A DNA stretch of 64,000 bases from Zygnema circumcarinatum SAG 698-1b. Taxonomy: Eukaryota; Plantae; Zygnematophyceae. The notes under the pieces are model-generated. The model had not been told where the DNA came from. It saw nothing but the letters and a program-made list of their open reading frames with translations, and ran no database searches. The stretch lies in contig CM074806.1 in assembly GCA_037447605.1 (NCBI GenBank), positions 1,674,001 through 1,738,000 of the forward strand. Reading direction: 5' to 3'. The position numbers and the translations under genes were made by a program. Position 1 is the first letter of the stretch. Every line of letters begins with the position of its first letter. This document shows, piece after piece, positions 1 through 35,454 of this stretch.

Positions 1-1781
1 AGTTTGGCATCTTCGCATAACCTGGAAAGTAGTTGATATCTACAATGAAAAAATAACTGGACGCGCGACTATCACGGATAAGGTCGTAATTAAATAGGCG
101 CAGGCCTAGCTTTCTCCTTAAACGCTCAGAGATGGCCACTACAAGGTTATTGGGCGGAAGTGGGGTGGAAGCTAAGCTCTTATCAATGGCTTCTCCTGAA
201 CCCCCTTTAGTGGTGTTGGAGATGTGAGAAAAGGATTGAAGGCCGTCTTTATCGGTGAGGTCTGCTTCCAGTACATCTGCACAAAGTGGGGGGAGTGGGG
301 GGGGAGAGGAAAAAGGATAAGGCTTGAGTGGCAAACTGAGGAGAGCAGATGCCTGAGGTGACTGGCCTTACCCAAAGAAAACGCTGTCACACTTTATGAC
401 CATCGAATCGAATTTAACCTCCCTAAAGCAGGCCTGAGAATGAAAGCAGTTCAATATGAGGAAAGACTATGCAGAACATTGTCAATGTTCTCTGCACTTG
501 CAGCTGTTGGAGTTTAGGCGGTCTGCGTACTTAACGCCAACATGCTTGACATGAAAAACCCCCTAGCTCTGAAAATCATCAGAACCATGTCTGGTTTTCA
601 TCCTGAGAGCAGATTGCACTATAGCCGGATAATTCGTTTCTGAATTCCAGAACTTATAAAATGGGTAACCTTCATGTAATTTTTATACAAAAATGCGTAA
701 ACTATACATGAAGCAAAGATTTTGCAGAAATTTCAGAAAATTCTAAAGCTTATTTCGGGTTGGTTAACGTTGCCAAGAAAGTCAGCCACAAATCCTCTCA
801 GTGGAACCAAAACTGCAATATTTGATGTTTAACCAAGGGAAGTGGTTGAAAGGAGGTTTCAGCCAAACAAGGTTCCTTTAAACGGGGCCATATTCGCGAG
901 TTAGCCAGATGCTTGAGTGGAATCGTCCCACAGTTACTGCAAGTGAACTACCGGCATCCTCTACCTTTCTAGGTTAACAAGTGAAGCTCCACTGTTCATT
1001 TATGCCACTGCTTACGTTCGTACGCGTTCAGATTCGTCTTCTGCTCTGCAGATAAGCCACTTAGGACTCCTCCATCATCAAAATGGCTTACCACTTCGCA
1101 CTGAGGACGGGCATAAAAAACGCCTTATTCCAGAGTTTGCGAAAACGAGAGCCATGTGGGATCACCTGGAAGCGATTTCCTCCGGCAGCACTTGACGTAC
1201 TCGCCTACTACATAGACCTTGAAGATAACTCCACCGTGATTCACAAACTGCTGCAACAGAAAGGGTGGCGCAAGCTTTTCCAGGCCACTTTTATTGTAAA
1301 CGAGCGACATCAGATGGGAGATTGCGGTTCCATCCGCTACTAAAGGCTTAGCAATAACAGGAAACCGTAACCCCGATGCCTCAAACTGGTGGAACAGCGC
1401 ACCACTGCCTTGCTTTTCTGTAATTATCAGCTGCTTCGGAATGCCAACCCAGCCATAAGAATCGTATGACTTCTCTTGTTCAAACACCTGCAGCATAGAC
1501 ACCCTATTATGGAGTCGCTGAATAGCTTCAGGCGGATCCAAGATGATTACGTCGGGGTGGAGAGCCTGATACTCTTCCAGTTGGCTGTACCAGTCCTTGC
1601 CGGTCTGTTTGTGCAGAATCGCATCAAAGAGCCCCTGCTCTTTCAGCGGCTTCCCGAGGTCGACGGCTACAAGTTCCACCCCCTTCTCCTTCGACTGCAG
1701 CAGCAGCGACTCCTTCAAGAAGCTATTGATCTTTTTCTCGGCCAGCGCATAGCCGATCCTGAACTTACATTCCCCGGCCAT
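1..1781 (-). CDS. ITPK: Inositol 1,3,4-trisphosphate 5/6-kinase (ATP-grasp), 3' end runs off the window
   Basis: Exon 1 is 1781-1166 (MAGECKFRIGYALAEKK...FDAILHK...PLVADGTAISH...QQFVNHGGVIFKVYVVG...RRKSLP). A phase-1 GT-AG intron spans 1165-277. Exon 2 from 276 reads DVLEAD...SFSHISN...LGLRLFNYDLIRD...IVDINYFPGYAKMP, the typical ITPK C-terminal motifs. Confidence 0.95.
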
Positions 1782-1881
1782 GAATCTCGTGCATGGACTC
1801 AAGCACAGGCGCCTCCTGCTCTCTCTGTGCCCTGCCTCTCCTCTCCCATCCTCCCTCGCCCTTCCTCTTCCCTCTCCCTTT

Positions 1882-1929
1882 CCCTCGCCCTCGCCCTCGC
1901 CCTCGCCCTCGCCCTCGCCCTCGCCCTCG
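1882..1929. repeat. (CCCTCG)8 hexanucleotide microsatellite upstream of the ITPK start
   Basis: Eight exact units, followed by a short (GCCA)n tract. Confidence 0.95.
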
Positions 1930-2104
1930 CTTGCAAGCCAGCCAGCCAGCCAGCCAGCCTGATCTTTCTCGCTGGCCGCCCCCCCTGGCACCCAGTCACC
2001 CACCAGCGGCGGCGATCGTACGAACGTCCGTACGGACGGACGGTACCTCTCCCGCCCGGACTTGTTGACTTGGCGCCCTCGGCCTCGGCCTCGGCCTCGC
2101 CTTC

Positions 2105-2885: not shown

Positions 2886-4938
2886 ATGGACCGAATTTCT
2901 GAAGGTTCATCGCCGAACGGGTCGGAGTGTCCGAGGAATCTCAAGCAGGGAGCTTCAGGGAGCTATGAAGGGTGTAGGTTGTGGGAGAAGGAACCAAGTG
3001 ATGGCTTGCCAGTTGCGCGTGCTTCACACATAGTAAGCTTCCAGGATGTGTCAAGTTGGAGGCCACGCCGAGGGAGCTATATGTCAGGAAGGAGACAATC
3101 GCAGTATGGTTGGAGAAGGAGGATAAGGCCAGGATCGCTCGGTAGGCCGGCAGTCTGTTGTGCCGCAGCGGCTAACGGGAGTGCTGTAGAGAGGTTGGAG
3201 ACATCTCGGGGCGGTTCGGACTTAAGACCGGATGACAAGGCTCCCGAGGTAAGCGGAGTGATGAGGCTACTGGTGATGCATGCTGCGAACGCCTTCATAG
3301 TTCCAGCATTAATTATGCCAACTGTTGATTGCTCAATAAGTTGCAACTCGAAGCCGTTTGATGCGCAATTGCATTCTGTATCCTCCTCCAGGTAACGAAA
3401 TTTTGTGGGTCGTGCCATGTTTGTCAGCCTGACGATACATGTTTTTATCGTTGCTACGAAGCTACATGCATTACCCACTTTCGTTGGGGTGAAATACTTG
3501 ACTGTTTCAATCACGTACGGGAAATTGCCCAGTTCTTTATTGTATGCCACTAACAAATGCAGGAGACATGCGTGGTGTTGCAGGAGCCCCTTTGGAAGGA
3601 GATACAGGAGGAAGCTCGTCTTCAGTCCGTGGCCGAGCCATATCTGGCCAGCTTCCTATACGCCACTATTTTAGCGCACTCATCACTTGAGAAAGCCCTC
3701 GCTTTTCACGTGGCCAACAAGCTTGCTGATGCGACGCTGCTCAGCACCCAGCTGTTCGCACTGTTCTCTGAAATCTTTTTGCAGGATGCAGAGATTAAGG
3801 TGAGTAAAAATACAACTTGTATTGACATGAACTTGCAGTGGGAATTTCGAAGAAACCAGAAGGCTTTTTTTTCATTTCGATTATGGAAAAGCTCTTCAAG
3901 GTTTCTTTTTGTACATTTTGACGCTTCCGATTCTCGCACGGTTGCAGGCAGCCATACGAGCAGATATGCAAGCTTTCAAGGAGCGCGACCCCGCCTGCTC
4001 GGGCTATGTTCATGGCATGCTTTACTTTAAGGGCTTCCTAGCCTGTCAGATTCATCGTGCCTCACATAAACTCTGGCATCAAAGCCGGATTTCTCTCGCA
4101 CTGGCGTTGCAGAACCGCGTCTCCGAGGTGTTTCAGGTCGACATCCATCCAGGTGAGGGCAATGATTCAACTGGGCCACAATGAAATATTGACAGGTGCT
4201 TCTTGTGGTGGTAGTGGTTTAGTAGGCGAAGAGAATTTTGATAATAGTGACTACGGATCCATTTGCTTCTGCAGTACGCATATTCTTAATCGTGTTTGAT
4301 GATGCCAAAGCACATGGTGTAAGGTCGGTTTTTTATTTCTTTGTCTGGGCTTTACTGGAAGCCACGCCTGGATTGAACTCTAACTAGGCATGCTACGACT
4401 TATTCATTCAGATTAGCTGACTAATTAGCTGTCTTAGCTGACTGAATCAGTTCATCAGAAGGAACTAATGAGTTATGAAGTGAGATGCTGCACATAGCCT
4501 GCTAGTTGAAAATCACAAACTGACTTCAGGATCAGATTTTGGTTGATTGCAGGCGCTACCTTGGGCCACGGCCTTCTCTTCGACCACGCGACGGGTGTTG
4601 TGATCGGTGAAACTGCAGTCGTCGGAAACAATGTCTCCATCCTCCACCATGTGACCCTTGGAGGGACAGGAGCAGCTGCAGGAGACCGCCATCCGAAGAT
4701 TCGCGATGGTGTATTGATTGGCGCGGGTGCCACTCTGTTGGGGCCCATTGTGGTCGGTGAGGGGGCGCAGATTGGAGCGTCCTCCCTTGTGCTCTCGGAG
4801 GTGCCGCCATTCAGCACGGCTGTGGGAGTGCCCGCGCGAATCATTGAGCCCAAAGGGACGAAGGCGCCTGAGAAGCGCGACATGCCTGGGCAGTCCATGG
4901 ACCACTGCTCCACCATCATCGACGACTATCAGATCTGA
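2886..4938 (+). CDS. SERAT: Serine O-acetyltransferase with N-terminal extension
   Basis: Exons are ~2886-3248 (start uncertain; donor GAG|GTAAGC), 3563-3799, 3948-4152 and 4553-4938, and the phases are consistent. Motifs include EPYLASFLYATIL, ERDPAC, FKGFLACQIHR, VDIHPGA, DHATGVVIGETAVVG, LGGTG, DRHPKI, a hexapeptide-repeat region and a C-terminal DYQI. Confidence 0.95.
3351..3462 (+). repeat. Copy B of the ~110-bp dispersed direct repeat, in SERAT intron 1
   Basis: Aligns to 2105-2212 with a few substitutions and three short indels. Confidence 0.9.
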
Positions 4939-30380: not shown

Positions 30381-32020
30381 CACGAAAGCAGTGCCCTGCC
30401 GACCGACGGACTGACACCGCTGCGGTTGCATATTCCATGTTCCCAGAGCGTGGCCCGCCCCAAATTGGAGTTGGTCACGCCCGTGTCGGAGGCCACGTCA
30501 CACACACACGATCCACGCCATTGGCGGGCGCATGCGCGACGCGTGCGACGATTGGCCAGGACGAGGAGGCGCCGCGCGCGCGCGTGCTCACGCTCTTGCG
30601 CTCAGACAAGGCTCCGGGAGCAGGAAGCCAGGCGGTTCGCAAAAACCAGAAACCTTCAGGGACAGGCGGAGACAGACAGAGGCCGGCGTGCGAACAGAGG
30701 GTGTGGTCGATGTGAATAAATTTCGCCCTGTCTCTCTCTCTCTCACGATCTCTCCATGGCAGAGAAAGAGAGTGAGGGCGAGGGGGAGAGAGGAAGAGGG
30801 AGAGTGGGAGTGGGCGAGGGTGAGGGCGAGGGTGAGGGCGAGAGTGGACGACGAAGGGCGAGGGAGAGAGAGTTGCCAAATGGAAGGGGAGGGTGGGGAT
30901 AGAGATGTCACTCTCTCTTTTTAATCTGCTCTCACTCCCGCTCTCTTCCTTCTTGTTGTTTTCTCCCACGGCAGGCTGCCTCGCTCTCTCCTCTCACGGC
31001 ACGCTGCAACTCTCTCTTCTCTCCGCCCTTCTCCGCAAGTGAGAGCGAGAGAGAGAGATAAGGATGTCAGATGAAAGAGGAAGGAAGAAAAGGAGATGCA
31101 TCTCGTTCCCTCTTTCTCTCTCACTTCTTCTCCCTCCCACTCGCTCTCGCACACATCCTCTCACTCTCTCGTCTCACAGACGACACTCATCCTGTGTCTC
31201 CCTCGGGAGTGTGTTTGCGGGAGAAAGAGAGAGAAAAGGCTGCCAAGACGACGGGAAGGGAGAGGAGAAGATACCTCGAAATGCCTCTAGCTCTCCCACT
31301 CACTTCCCTCACCCTCCCTCTCGGTTTCTCTCACAGCAACCTCTCCCTCTCTCTCCTCTCACGCCAGGCTTTTCCCCTCTCTCCCATACGGGGGGAAGAG
31401 AGCGAGAGAGACGGAGAGGGAGAGAGAGAGAGTGAGAGAGGGCTTCCTGCTCGCTTGCTCGTATTGTATTCCTTTGAAGCGAACTTACAAATTGTTAAAT
31501 TAACTGGTCGCTCGCTAAGCCAAGTATGCCAATCGGGTGCTTGTTGGGTAACACTCAACGTTTGAAGGCTGCTGGTAATAGTTTGATAGTTTTCAACACA
31601 TCGCCGCTCAGAGGCACCTTCCGTATACCCCGAACTTGTGGAAGTTCCCTCGTTACATCCTCTTTTGAATAATGACTAGCGCTCCCTGGGTTACCTGAGA
31701 TATCCTTTTCGGGGTGAGGGAGAGAGAGGGGGGGGGTGAGGGGGGGGAAGGGAGCGGGAGGGGGGGGGAAGAGGGAGGGCGAGGGAGCGAGGGCGCACAG
31801 TCGAGAGTGCGGCACGACTCGCTCATGCGCTGTCCGCCGCACTCCGAAAGCGACGTCGCTTTTACGGCCGATACGCTCGATACGGTAACTTAATTGAGTA
31901 CACCTCTGGCCCACTGCTTAGTCAAGTTCGAGTACACTAAAAAAGAGAGATGTACTTGTTCCAGAGAGGGAGAGCCTGCGCACGAGCCAACAGGGCCCGA
32001 GCTCCCCTGCTGAGGTGGCG
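30381..32020. repeat. Copy 2 of the 1.64-kb duplication; an entire gap-bounded contig, probably a haplotig or assembly bubble
   Basis: N gaps flank it on both sides and it ends at the same base as copy 1. It appears identical to copy 1 by eye and by matching ORF translations, except at 31453-31626. Confidence 0.9.
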
Positions 32021-32030
32021 NNNNNNNNNN
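32021..32030. other. Assembly gap (10 N), followed by poly-C
   Basis: Run of n characters. Confidence 1.
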
Positions 32031-32144
32031 CCCCCCCCCCCCCCCCTCCAGCGCCAGCGACGCTCCGCGCTTGTGCAGGGCCATGGCGGCCCGCGCAGCC
32101 CCGCCCGCTCGCCCTCCTGCCCGCCTGCCTGCCCGCCTGCCGCC

Positions 32145-35034
32145 ATGCCGCGCTTACCGTTCGCGCTTGTCTGCCGCGTCACTGCTCGGGCCTGCCCGCC
32201 CGCCGCTTCTGCCCTCCTCGGTGGGTGGAGGAGCCTGCAGAGCGGCGCTGCTGCCGGGCATGGCTCCCTGGAGCTGGCCGTGCCGGAGATGGACGAGCAC
32301 ACGCGATTGCTCAGCGAGCAGGTGCTGGGAGGGCGCATGGCGGCGCTCAGCCGCGCCATCACGCTGTGTGAGTCCGAGCGCTCGCATCACCGCACGCAGG
32401 CGGCGGCCCTTCTGCAGGATGTCACGCAGCGCAGCGCGGCAGTGACTGCCCACGCGATGTTTCGAATTGGAGTCACGGGCCCGCCAGGCGCTGGAAAATC
32501 CTCTTTGATTGAAAGTAGGTCGTCTATGGTTTTTTTTTCCAAGCTGCACTGACACTCGGCGTTCAGCTTACGACTCGATGCGAAAACATGGTGTTGCGAA
32601 GTTGTTTGCATTTCTCATCTGATGCTGTACGGAGGTTTTTCTTTCATGTTTGGTTTCTATTCCTTCGAGCTTTACACTCCGACTGGCATATCTGCAGAGC
32701 TTACAACTTTTCTGACACAGCTTCTTTTATGGCAAATTGGCGATGCAAGACAGGACAGGGGCCTGTAGGAATTTCGCTGTTTGAAATGAAATTGTCTGTA
32801 TCGAATTCTAATGAATAGTGCATAGGCGTCAGAGCTGGGCCTGCGTGCTGTGGAGTCAGGGGAGCAAGTTGCAGTGCTGGCAATCGACCCCTCCTCCCAG
32901 CGCAGCGGAGGGTCCATCCTGGGCGACAAGACTCGCATGGAGGAACTTTCTAAAACCGAGCGTGCATTTGTGAGACCGTCACCCTCCAGAGGCCACATTG
33001 GCGGGCTCACACGAACTACTGCTGATGCCGCTCTTTTATGCGAGGTAAGGCCCCGTCTCGAACAGTCGCGCAACGGCCACCTTCTGTTCAACTTTTCGCA
33101 ATCGACATACAAGCTCTCAAACTTTTTCTTTCCTGTCTGTAAAAGTGAAACATTCTCTGAATTCGTGCAAGAAGTAAGGGTTGTTGATGCAGTTGGTGGT
33201 ATAAAAGAGATACAATTTCTTTCCATTACGTCCTCACTCGTTTGCGTGAGTAGTCGTAGTGATGTAGGTAGTCAAAACTCGTCGGTTGGTGATATCGTAG
33301 GCCAGAATGAAAGACGGAGGGCCCTCGTGTGGGCAGGATGATCCATGAGGGTGCAGGCTGCAGGCTGCACTCTGCTGCTGGTGGAGACGGTGGGTGGCGG
33401 CCAAGCCGATACGGCGGTAGCCGATATAGTGGACCTCGTGTTGCTTGTCCTGCCCCCAGCTGGCGGAGACGAACTGCAGGGAATAAAGAAGGGTGAGAAT
33501 TCATTTTGCTAAAAGAATGAACTTATTTGCTTAGTCACAGGCTTGTTGTTTGGGACGGAATGCGCAATCGAATGAACGTAGCAAAGGCTGAGGTGATGAT
33601 CAGACCTTCACCGTCGTCGTTTAATGCATGACAACAAGTAGTGTCTGATAAGCGTGGCTTGAGTTTTCGTTGCCTTCACTGACATCATTTGACAACTTGC
33701 TGAATCTTTTCTCCACTAATCTTACTTTTCATCTTACTATGCATTTGATATCATTATGTAGTGGTGAGTTGCTGCTGTATGGCGACAAACTTACATCGCG
33801 TATAAACTTTGAGTTTCACTGCCCACGAAGGACATATACCTGCTCCGGAAACTAAAACACAGTCTTCATTCGGATACAGGGCTTGTGTTCGTTACACTGG
33901 GATGAGAACGTAAGGTGCAACTTCGTCTGACTCACAAGCTGTTCAAGTTATGAGGGTGTTACTGGGAAGCAGGAATTATAGAAGTTGCAGACATTGTCGT
34001 TATAAACAAAGCAGATGGACACCTAAAAGACGCAGCCATGGCAGCTGTATCTGAATATCGGGCAGCCCTGCAATTTTCCCATCCTCGCTCCCCTGCATGG
34101 AGCCCGCCTGTGAGTCCCTTTCTCTTCTGCCGGCTGTTGGCAGATGCTGCCTTTGTGCTTGTGCATGAGAGCAGCTAGGAGGTCGCTTTGGCTTCTTCAG
34201 TATTCGAATGTCCTGAATAGCTATGAGGATTTAAAAGGTTATTAAGTGAAATTGTATAGTAGCAAGAATCTGTAAGAATTTGAAGACAGCAGGATTTAAA
34301 TTCGAGGAAGTCAGTCAATTGTATATGCCTCGTACATGGATGCACATGATCCATATGATGCGCATTTCAATCTCATTCCTCCTCCACTCTAGCGCACTTC
34401 TTGCACAGCTTGAGATGTCCGTCCTCCCGCTGAATACCTCCGTGACTTTCAGTAGTTGAAAAGATACTTATTTTATTAGACCACCTCGAGCAGCCTCTCA
34501 CATCAGCAGTGCCATTGCAGGTGTTGGCTTGCAGCTCGCGGACTGGTCTAGGCATGTCAGACCTTTGGCAACAGATGCTGACTTATGAGCGGGTCATGGG
34601 AACTGCTGGAGACCTTCAAACTCGACGTTCTGAACAGAGCCAAGGCCTGCTTTGGAGCAACGTGCAGAATGAGCTTCTCGACAGGTGAACAGGGTTTGGA
34701 TGGTTTGGTCGGTTAGAACTTGGCGTCGTTAAGTCTATGCCCTGTCAAGAGAGACCGAACTCCATGAAAATGATCTACCTTTGAACGTGAGAGGGGTTAA
34801 TGGGAAACACCATTCGCCTTTGCCAGTGGTTTGACGACTCACTGGCTGGCTGGTGGTTTCGTTTTGGTTTTCATCTAATCAGAGCCGGGCTTTGTGTACA
34901 GGTTTTATCGAGATAAAAAGCTGAAAGGAACTTTCAAACTCTGGGAGCAAAGTGTGGCGGAGGGCAAACTTGCGTCTCGCACGGCTGCGTACTGCATTAT
35001 TGAATCCTTCTTCCGCATCCCTGATACTCATTGA
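32145..35034 (+). CDS. MMAA: Methylmalonic aciduria type A / MeaB (ArgK-like) GTPase, chaperone of B12-dependent methylmalonyl-CoA mutase, with a probable mitochondrial presequence; 6 exons
   Basis: Spliced translation: [11 protein letters not shown]; [17 protein letters not shown] (P-loop, 32477-32500); [28 protein letters not shown]; [14 protein letters not shown]; LVETVGGGQ; [29 protein letters not shown]; TGLGMSDLW; RRSEQ...LWS. The stop TGA is at 35032-35034. The N-terminus is Arg/Ala-rich and lacks acidic residues. Confidence 0.93.
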
Positions 35035-35454
35035 CTGTCCATCTGGCAGCAGCCTGCCATATTTCCCGTAAGGGTCAGCTTTGAAATGGTCAACTCGTGA
35101 TGTACAGAGTTCATCGGTGGTTTTGGCCCGGCTAAATATGTTAAGGTGGTGTCAAGCACTGACTCTTTGCTGCAAGGTCAAATTGCTCATATATTAATAG
35201 ACGGATGGTATTAAGCCACCTTGTAAGTATATCAGTCCACCAGCAACTACAGACTGGCAGGGCATGGAGCCTTTGTAAGCTTAGTGAGATTTTACCCTTT
35301 TGTTTCACAGGAAATTTGGATTTTTATTTCTGTATGCAAGGACGCAGTTCAATACCAACAAGTTTTCTCCATGCTTGCACATGCGGCCACATTGGCCGAA
35401 CCCTACTGTCCTGTAAGCCCCGCAGTAGCCATAGCCAGCGCCAGCGCCAGCGCC

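Follow-up and report, generated by a model that had tools for sequence, protein, structure and literature searches.

The nuclear genome of the streptophyte alga Zygnema circumcarinatum carries a transcribed and spliced orthologue of the B12 chaperone gene MMAA/MeaB

In a stretch of 64,000 nucleotides from the genome of Zygnema circumcarinatum SAG 698-1b (assembly GCA_037447605.1, contig CM074806.1, positions 1,674,001 to 1,738,000 of the forward strand; hereafter the window, with positions counted from its first letter), we found a six-exon gene for a protein of the MMAA/MeaB family. The gene is intact, transcribed and spliced as modelled, and sequence comparisons identify it as a genuine orthologue of MMAA/MeaB within the nuclear genome of a plant-lineage organism. 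It adds a member to a known family, and its interest lies in the host lineage. Textbooks describe land plants as free of B12. The encoded chaperone probably works with a methylmalonyl-CoA mutase (MUT or MCM) that would be encoded elsewhere in the genome.

Results

Gene model and transcript evidence

The gene lies on the plus strand at positions 32145-35034 and its coding sequence of 1152 nucleotides translates in frame into 383 codons, with introns of phases 1, 0, 1, 0 and 2 and a TGA stop codon at 35032-35034 (Table 1). As RNA evidence, we compared assembled contigs of the runs X1, X2 and X6, which stem from three studies, with positions 32040-35300. Each of the five GT..AG junctions of the model was seen in spliced RNA contigs at exactly the modelled position and, because of this, we consider the gene transcribed and spliced as modelled. 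A preliminary description, made from the letters of the window alone, had proposed a complete, spliced six-exon MMAA/MeaB gene with all G-motifs and a presequence-like N-terminus. The first of these claims was borne out by the translation, the RNA junctions and the tiling of the Pfam profile described below, and the second by the alignment with MMAA and MeaB proteins; the third agrees with the composition of the predicted first 42 residues, which contain four Arg and neither Asp nor Glu.

Family assignment

Profile and structure searches were run exon by exon, and the whole protein was represented by its full-length relatives P0269 and P0002. Exons 1-5 tile the Pfam family MeaB (PF03308) in order over positions 1-265 of 273, with scores between 26.5 and 92.1 bits against a cut-off of 23.1 bits, and no other Pfam family was matched. 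The exons likewise tile the NCBIfam MeaB models NF006958 (positions 9-290 of 333) and TIGR00750 in order. The separately scored exons sum up to approximately 289 bits for NF006958 and 209 bits for TIGR00750, compared to whole-protein equivalog cut-offs of 329 and 240.75 bits, respectively. We treat this shortfall as an effect of scoring pieces, since the full-length relatives, which are 60-76% identical, pass both cut-offs: P0269 scored 385/289 bits, the Riccia protein 389/294 bits and the Closterium protein 366/281 bits, and bovine MMAA is above both as well. Exon 6 gave no profile match by itself in Pfam and matches streptophyte relatives only.

The solved structures matched by exons 1-5 at E values below 0.2 were all MMAA, MeaB, ArgK or IcmF G-domains, human MMAA being the top match for exons 2, 3 and 5. 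The exons did not match any of the other G3E GTPases considered (UreG, HypB and CobW/ZNG1), and the full-length relatives reached 26-30 bits with the UreG model, compared to a cut-off of 204 bits. IcmF, in which a homologous G3E domain is fused with a mutase and a B12 domain, was also rejected, as its model gave at most 31 bits against a cut-off of 1500 bits (the window exons matched the IcmF G-domain weakly, at 16-31 bits) and the window gene, with its 383 codons, is stand-alone and unfused.

Conserved and changed residues

Residues were compared in human numbering, with the window exons added to the alignment as separate fragments, and their roles were taken from the paper on the human MMUT-MMAA complex (PMC10356863). 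The equivalents of K156, S157, D180, D193, R196, E242, D270, E271, K276, N289, K290 and D292 are all kept. K156 and the Mg-binding S157 belong to the Walker A sequence GPPGAGKSS, which the last part of exon 1 encodes, whereas Asp-180, Asp-193 and Arg-196 are switch I residues and Asp-292 is part of the motif NKAD. The further G-motifs GDKTRM, ETVGGGQ and the switch III loop GDELQGIKK are present; this loop is specific to the MeaB/MMAA subfamily, where it relays signals between mutase and chaperone. The contacts to the B12 domain, G187, R209, P210 and R214, are kept as well, R214 being the state found in eukaryotes, compared to Gly in four alphaproteobacteria.

Thus compared, human MMAA (the cblA protein; solved structures 2WWW and, with MMUT, 8GJU) shares with the window protein the domain order, the P-loop, the Mg ligands, switch I, switch III with an identical stretch of 12 residues, a presumed N-terminal presequence and the eukaryote-type R214. 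The two proteins differ in the guanine-specificity motif, which is TKSD in human and NKAD in the window, and by the changes Y207F, R202K, T198E and V246G. Position 277 is Lys in the window protein as in bacterial MeaB, but Arg in human. MeaB of Methylobacterium extorquens (2QM7, 8DPB) is a member of the same family with which exons 1, 3 and 4 align over their whole length; the equivalents of its K188 and K189 are both Lys in the window protein, and both proteins have Phe, the bacterial state, at the position of Tyr-207. In contrast to the window gene, which stands alone among unrelated nuclear genes, bacterial meaB genes have neither presequence nor introns and usually lie in an operon with the mutase gene. 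The V246G change in switch II (ETVGGGQ) is common to all orthologues from Zygnematophyceae and Riccia, whereas Val-246 is retained in Mesostigma, chlorophytes, fungi, animals and bacteria.

Orthologues and descent

Homologues were searched with exon 2 against 1.84 billion representatives and then with the best full-length match, P0002, and the best 120 matches were listed in each case. Orthologues from several Closterium strains, from Spirogloea muscicola (three copies), Riccia fluitans and R. sorocarpa, as well as the transcripts P0269 and P0002, ranked above all bacteria. The exon pieces of the window are 76% identical to P0151/P0269, 66% to P0002 and 58-62% to the Closterium, Spirogloea and Riccia sequences, compared to about 50% for Chlorella and 51-54% for MeaB of Rhodospirillales. 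Both Riccia species and Closterium have the same six exons as the window gene; their introns lie in the same places and phases, and the internal exons have the same lengths (212/136/137/164). Because its spliceosomal introns lie at positions common to liverwort and desmid orthologues, the window gene is not a contaminant. The MMAA genes of Chlorella variabilis, Chlorella sp. A99 and [Myrmecia] bisecta are also nuclear and intron-bearing, but none of the four Chlorella intron positions is shared with the window gene.

A tree was calculated with IQ-TREE under the LG+C20 model, using a quick search with support from the Shimodaira-Hasegawa-like approximate likelihood ratio test (SH-aLRT) only. 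It contained a eukaryote-only MMAA clade of 26 rows without any bacterium inside (SH-aLRT 99), apart from bacterial MeaB. Nested within this clade were a green-lineage grouping (SH-aLRT 90), which includes the Chlorella and Myrmecia sequences, and a subclade of Zygnematophyceae plus Riccia (SH-aLRT 98). The exon pieces of the window, entered as separate rows, were placed in the streptophyte subclade beside P0269 (SH-aLRT 99). The MMAA copy of Mesostigma viride grouped with the chlorophytes. The ratio of non-synonymous to synonymous substitution rates (dN/dS) was 0.21 in both comparisons made, one of the two Riccia species and one of two Closterium strains. Vertical descent within the streptophytes under purifying selection is well supported by these comparisons; contamination and recent transfer are rejected because the orthologues sit in the eukaryote-only MMAA clade.

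The preliminary description had reckoned with a grouping of the protein with non-B12 SIMIBI GTPases and with a contaminant contig, and had suggested a phylogeny as a means to distinguish vertical descent from horizontal transfer. What we found is a grouping with B12-type MeaB/MMAA, introns placed as in the liverwort and desmid orthologues, and a tree that speaks for vertical descent. Its remark that novelty would depend on the species was apt, as the host is a streptophyte alga, a group from which MMAA had been reported absent.

Within the land plants, the orthologues retrieved were confined to the two Riccia species; none from Marchantia, mosses, hornworts or vascular plants was placed above the bacteria among the matches listed, and the same applies to Klebsormidium and Chara. 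MMAA thus looks patchily retained among streptophytes.

Orthologous loci

Both Riccia genomes carry the same ABC1-kinase gene after MMAA on the opposite strand (L001, 13928-19342; L006, 7370-8589), which indicates a syntenic locus. No mutase gene was seen adjoining MMAA on the contigs examined from Riccia, Closterium, Chlorella and two metagenomic eukaryotes. The streptophyte orthologues are annotated merely as hypothetical proteins. The deposited Closterium models P0001 (strain Naga37s-1) and P0005 (Yama58-4) fuse MMAA with an upstream KDPG-aldolase gene and, in one of them, also with a downstream AP2 gene, and one deposited Closterium model repeats exon 2. At the locus of Closterium NIES-68, part of exon 4 was observed a second time, within an intron (L002, 12684-12743).

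Transcript variants

An alternative acceptor at 33337 adds the codons D-D-P followed by TGA, so that, according to the reading frame, the resulting isoform is unproductive. This acceptor was the sole form in the contigs of X1, had a depth of 33.6 compared to 69.1 for the canonical junction in X2 and was absent from X6. It may represent regulated unproductive splicing. Furthermore, a contig covering 32485-32862, i.e. the whole of intron 1 plus 30 nucleotides of each flanking exon, was present in the three runs with a depth of 42-70, which is similar to the exons and above exon 1. This suggests either strong retention of intron 1 or an internal transcript. With regard to an intron-borne RNA, the window gave no match to Rfam at the gathering score, nor did 31700-35400 at E values up to 1. 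In the 3' untranslated region (3' UTR), the loose end of an X2 contig at 35068 matches the sequence from 35312 onwards, pointing to an optional GT..AG intron, whereas the contigs of X1 and X6 are unspliced there.

5' end and start codon

Where the gene and its reading frame truly start is uncertain because a gap in the assembly and a stretch of poly-C adjoin the gene on its 5' side. The gap of 10 N at 32021-32030 lies 115 nucleotides upstream of the predicted start codon, and a GC-rich repeat with units of the type gcccgcctgcc is also found directly 5' of this codon, within 32021-32145. The RNA contigs reach 92-394 letters upstream past 32146, and positions 32040-32145, which include an upstream ATG, were masked as repeat in the read comparison. 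This out-of-frame ATG at 32083 has a strong context, with G at -3 and +4, and its open reading frame (ORF) overlaps the main start codon; given the neighbouring gap, it may be an assembly artefact. An error of one base in 32021-32145 would shift this ATG into the main frame and give a presequence longer by about 21 residues. The N-terminal extensions of the streptophyte orthologues are 25-40 residues longer before the conserved core than that of the window gene. The N-terminus of the model looks like a presequence.

Genomic neighbourhood

Other features of the window are included in Table 1. The best named match of the exon coding for inositol-tetrakisphosphate 1-kinase (ITPK) was from Closterium (64%), followed by land plants, and no chlorophyte was among the best 120 matches. 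This points to a streptophyte alga, probably a zygnematophycean one, as host.

Table 1 Features of the MMAA/MeaB gene and of other parts of the window.
Feature	Positions	Strand	Description	Basis
Exon 1	32145-32514	+	370 nt, ends phase 1; presequence-like N-terminus, N-terminal helical region, Walker A GPPGAGKSS	Pfam MeaB positions 1-51, E 1.4e-10; junction 32514/32833 in X1, X2, X6
Exon 2	32833-33044	+	212 nt; switch I, Mg ligands (D180, D193, R196 equivalents), B12-domain contacts G187, R209, P210, R214	Pfam MeaB positions 54-122, E 3.9e-26; top solved structure human MMAA 2WWW, 6.3e-22
Alternative 3' splice site	33337-33356	+	20 nt 5' of exon 3	Joint 33044/33337
Exon 3	33357-33492	+	136 nt, ends phase 1; Walker B/switch II ETVGGGQ, switch III GDELQGIKK	Pfam positions 123-167; aligned with MMAA and MeaB; junction 33044/33357 in X2, X6
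Exon 4	33973-34109	+	137 nt; NKAD guanine-specificity motif	Pfam positions 169-212; PDB MeaB match; junction 33492/33973 in X1, X2, X6
Exon 5	34521-34684	+	164 nt, ends phase 2; G5 region, presumed beginning of C-terminal helical dimerisation arm	Pfam positions 214-265; aligns with MMAA chain residues 257-307; junction 34109/34521 in three runs
Exon 6	34902-35034	+	133 nt including stop TGA; presumed C-terminal helices	62% identity with P0269 C-terminus, residues 369-408; junction 34684/34902 in three runs
Optional 3' UTR intron	35068-35310	+	GT..AG; begins 33 nt past stop codon	
Assembly gap and poly-C	32021-32047	.	10 N at 32021-32030, then poly-C run	
Upstream ORF	32083-32445	+	Out-of-frame ATG 32083-85, 120 codons, overlaps main start codon	
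ITPK exon	1128-2003	-	Inositol-tetrakisphosphate 1-kinase	Homologue search
Serine acetyltransferase N-terminal domain	3557-4027	+	Neighbouring gene	
Sec16-like TPR segment	10313-11053	-	Neighbouring gene	

Discussion

The distribution of B12-dependent enzymes in plants and algae was surveyed by Dorrell et al. (preprint 2023, paper 2024) in 1,663 plant and algal libraries, the most comprehensive survey to date. The preprint describes CblA (MMAA) as absent 'from the streptophytes', no RNR-II is recorded for any streptophyte, and the adenosyltransferase CblB is stated to persist in hornworts and liverworts, for a reason that is left open there. As regards CblA, the orthologues found here contradict this account. 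Beyond Dorrell et al., our literature search retrieved no report of methylmalonyl-CoA mutase or PCC for Klebsormidium, Zygnema, Closterium, Mesostigma or streptophytes.

We consider it probable that the MMAA of Z. circumcarinatum works with a methylmalonyl-CoA mutase whose gene would lie at another locus of the genome. MMAA co-occurs with MUT in the chlorophyte Picochlorum tauri (PMC12458973) and with the mutase in fungi (PMC8085122), and the family assignment, the RNA junctions, the kept key residues, the vertical descent and the low dN/dS of the orthologues speak for this proposal as well. The green algae with MMAA named above are reported to have MUT, too (PMC12458973; Dorrell et al.). According to this proposal, the gene product would be a nuclear-encoded G-protein chaperone of the MMAA/MeaB type, i.e. 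a G3E P-loop GTPase, that controls when an acyl-CoA mutase receives adenosylcobalamin and when damaged cofactor is removed from it, and its conserved switch I strand and switch III loop would couple GTP hydrolysis to the B12 domain of the mutase. The Arg-rich and acid-free N-terminus would direct the protein into mitochondria, where it would most likely serve the mutase, and a B12-dependent route from propionyl-CoA to succinyl-CoA would thereby be completed, using bacterial B12 taken up by the alga.

Several observations weigh against this proposal. There is no mutase gene in the 64-kb window. Dorrell et al. detected no MCM in streptophytes among their libraries; this negative is less secure because the same survey missed streptophyte CblA. 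The contacts of human MMAA to the substrate domain of the mutase, R300, R301, D340 and D344, are changed in the window protein, whereas Riccia keeps R300/R301. These four positions vary in every lineage outside animals, bacteria included. Finally, the upstream ATG and the stop-introducing splice variant, which is the sole form in one run, could limit protein output.

A possible alternative, which we regard as tentative, is that streptophytes, this alga, Closterium, Spirogloea and Riccia among them, lost the mutase and kept MMAA for another client with a B12-binding domain. Such a client might be an undescribed adenosylcobalamin enzyme, or MMAA might escort cobalamin or metals in general. The lack of MCM and RNR-II in streptophytes together with the persistence of CblB in hornworts and liverworts, as reported by Dorrell et al., would fit this explanation, as would the purifying selection on MMAA in Riccia and Closterium, the clade-specific V246G change in switch II, and an interface that is kept towards the B12 domain and changed towards the substrate domain. 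However, the failure of the same survey to record streptophyte CblA makes its negative result for MCM unreliable, the substrate-domain contacts vary also in MCM-bearing lineages, and MMAA tracks MUT closely elsewhere (PMC12458973, PMC8085122). The more specific version, in which zygnematophycean algae and Riccia would keep the MMAA/MMAB pair under purifying selection although the plant branch lost methylmalonyl-CoA mutase, appears doubtful to us.

It is improbable that the gene is a decaying relic which is transcribed without giving rise to a useful protein. The strong context of the upstream ATG, the exclusive use of the 33337 acceptor in the X1 contigs and the depth of the intron 1 unitig would be expected of such a relic, but the frame is open across six exons with every catalytic residue intact, the canonical junction is dominant in X2 and X6, the dN/dS of the orthologues is low at the value given above, and the upstream ATG, in a region adjoining an assembly gap, may be an artefact. 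That the gene is a bacterial contaminant, or that a bacterial meaB was recently acquired by horizontal transfer, is highly improbable since, although the matches from Rhodospirillales score about like Chlorella MMAA, the gene contains five RNA-confirmed spliceosomal introns at positions also occupied in nuclear genes of liverworts and desmids from chromosome-scale contigs, bacteria are outside the eukaryote clade in the tree and the neighbouring ITPK gene is of the streptophyte type.

These results show that the chaperone entered the plant branch by vertical descent and remains under constraint in it, with representatives in this alga, Closterium, Spirogloea, Mesostigma and two Riccia liverworts. 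If the mutase is retained, which we favour, the propionate shunt would survive in streptophyte algae and some liverworts, and its inferred early loss in green plants would be overturned. If the mutase was lost, an adenosylcobalamin-dependent function not yet described would exist in the plant lineage; if MMAA and MMAB are kept without it, the lineage from which land plants arose, together with some of their living members, would hold an undescribed client or use of adenosylcobalamin. The use of adenosylcobalamin near the origin of land plants thus becomes a question that can be answered by a genome-wide search for the mutase.

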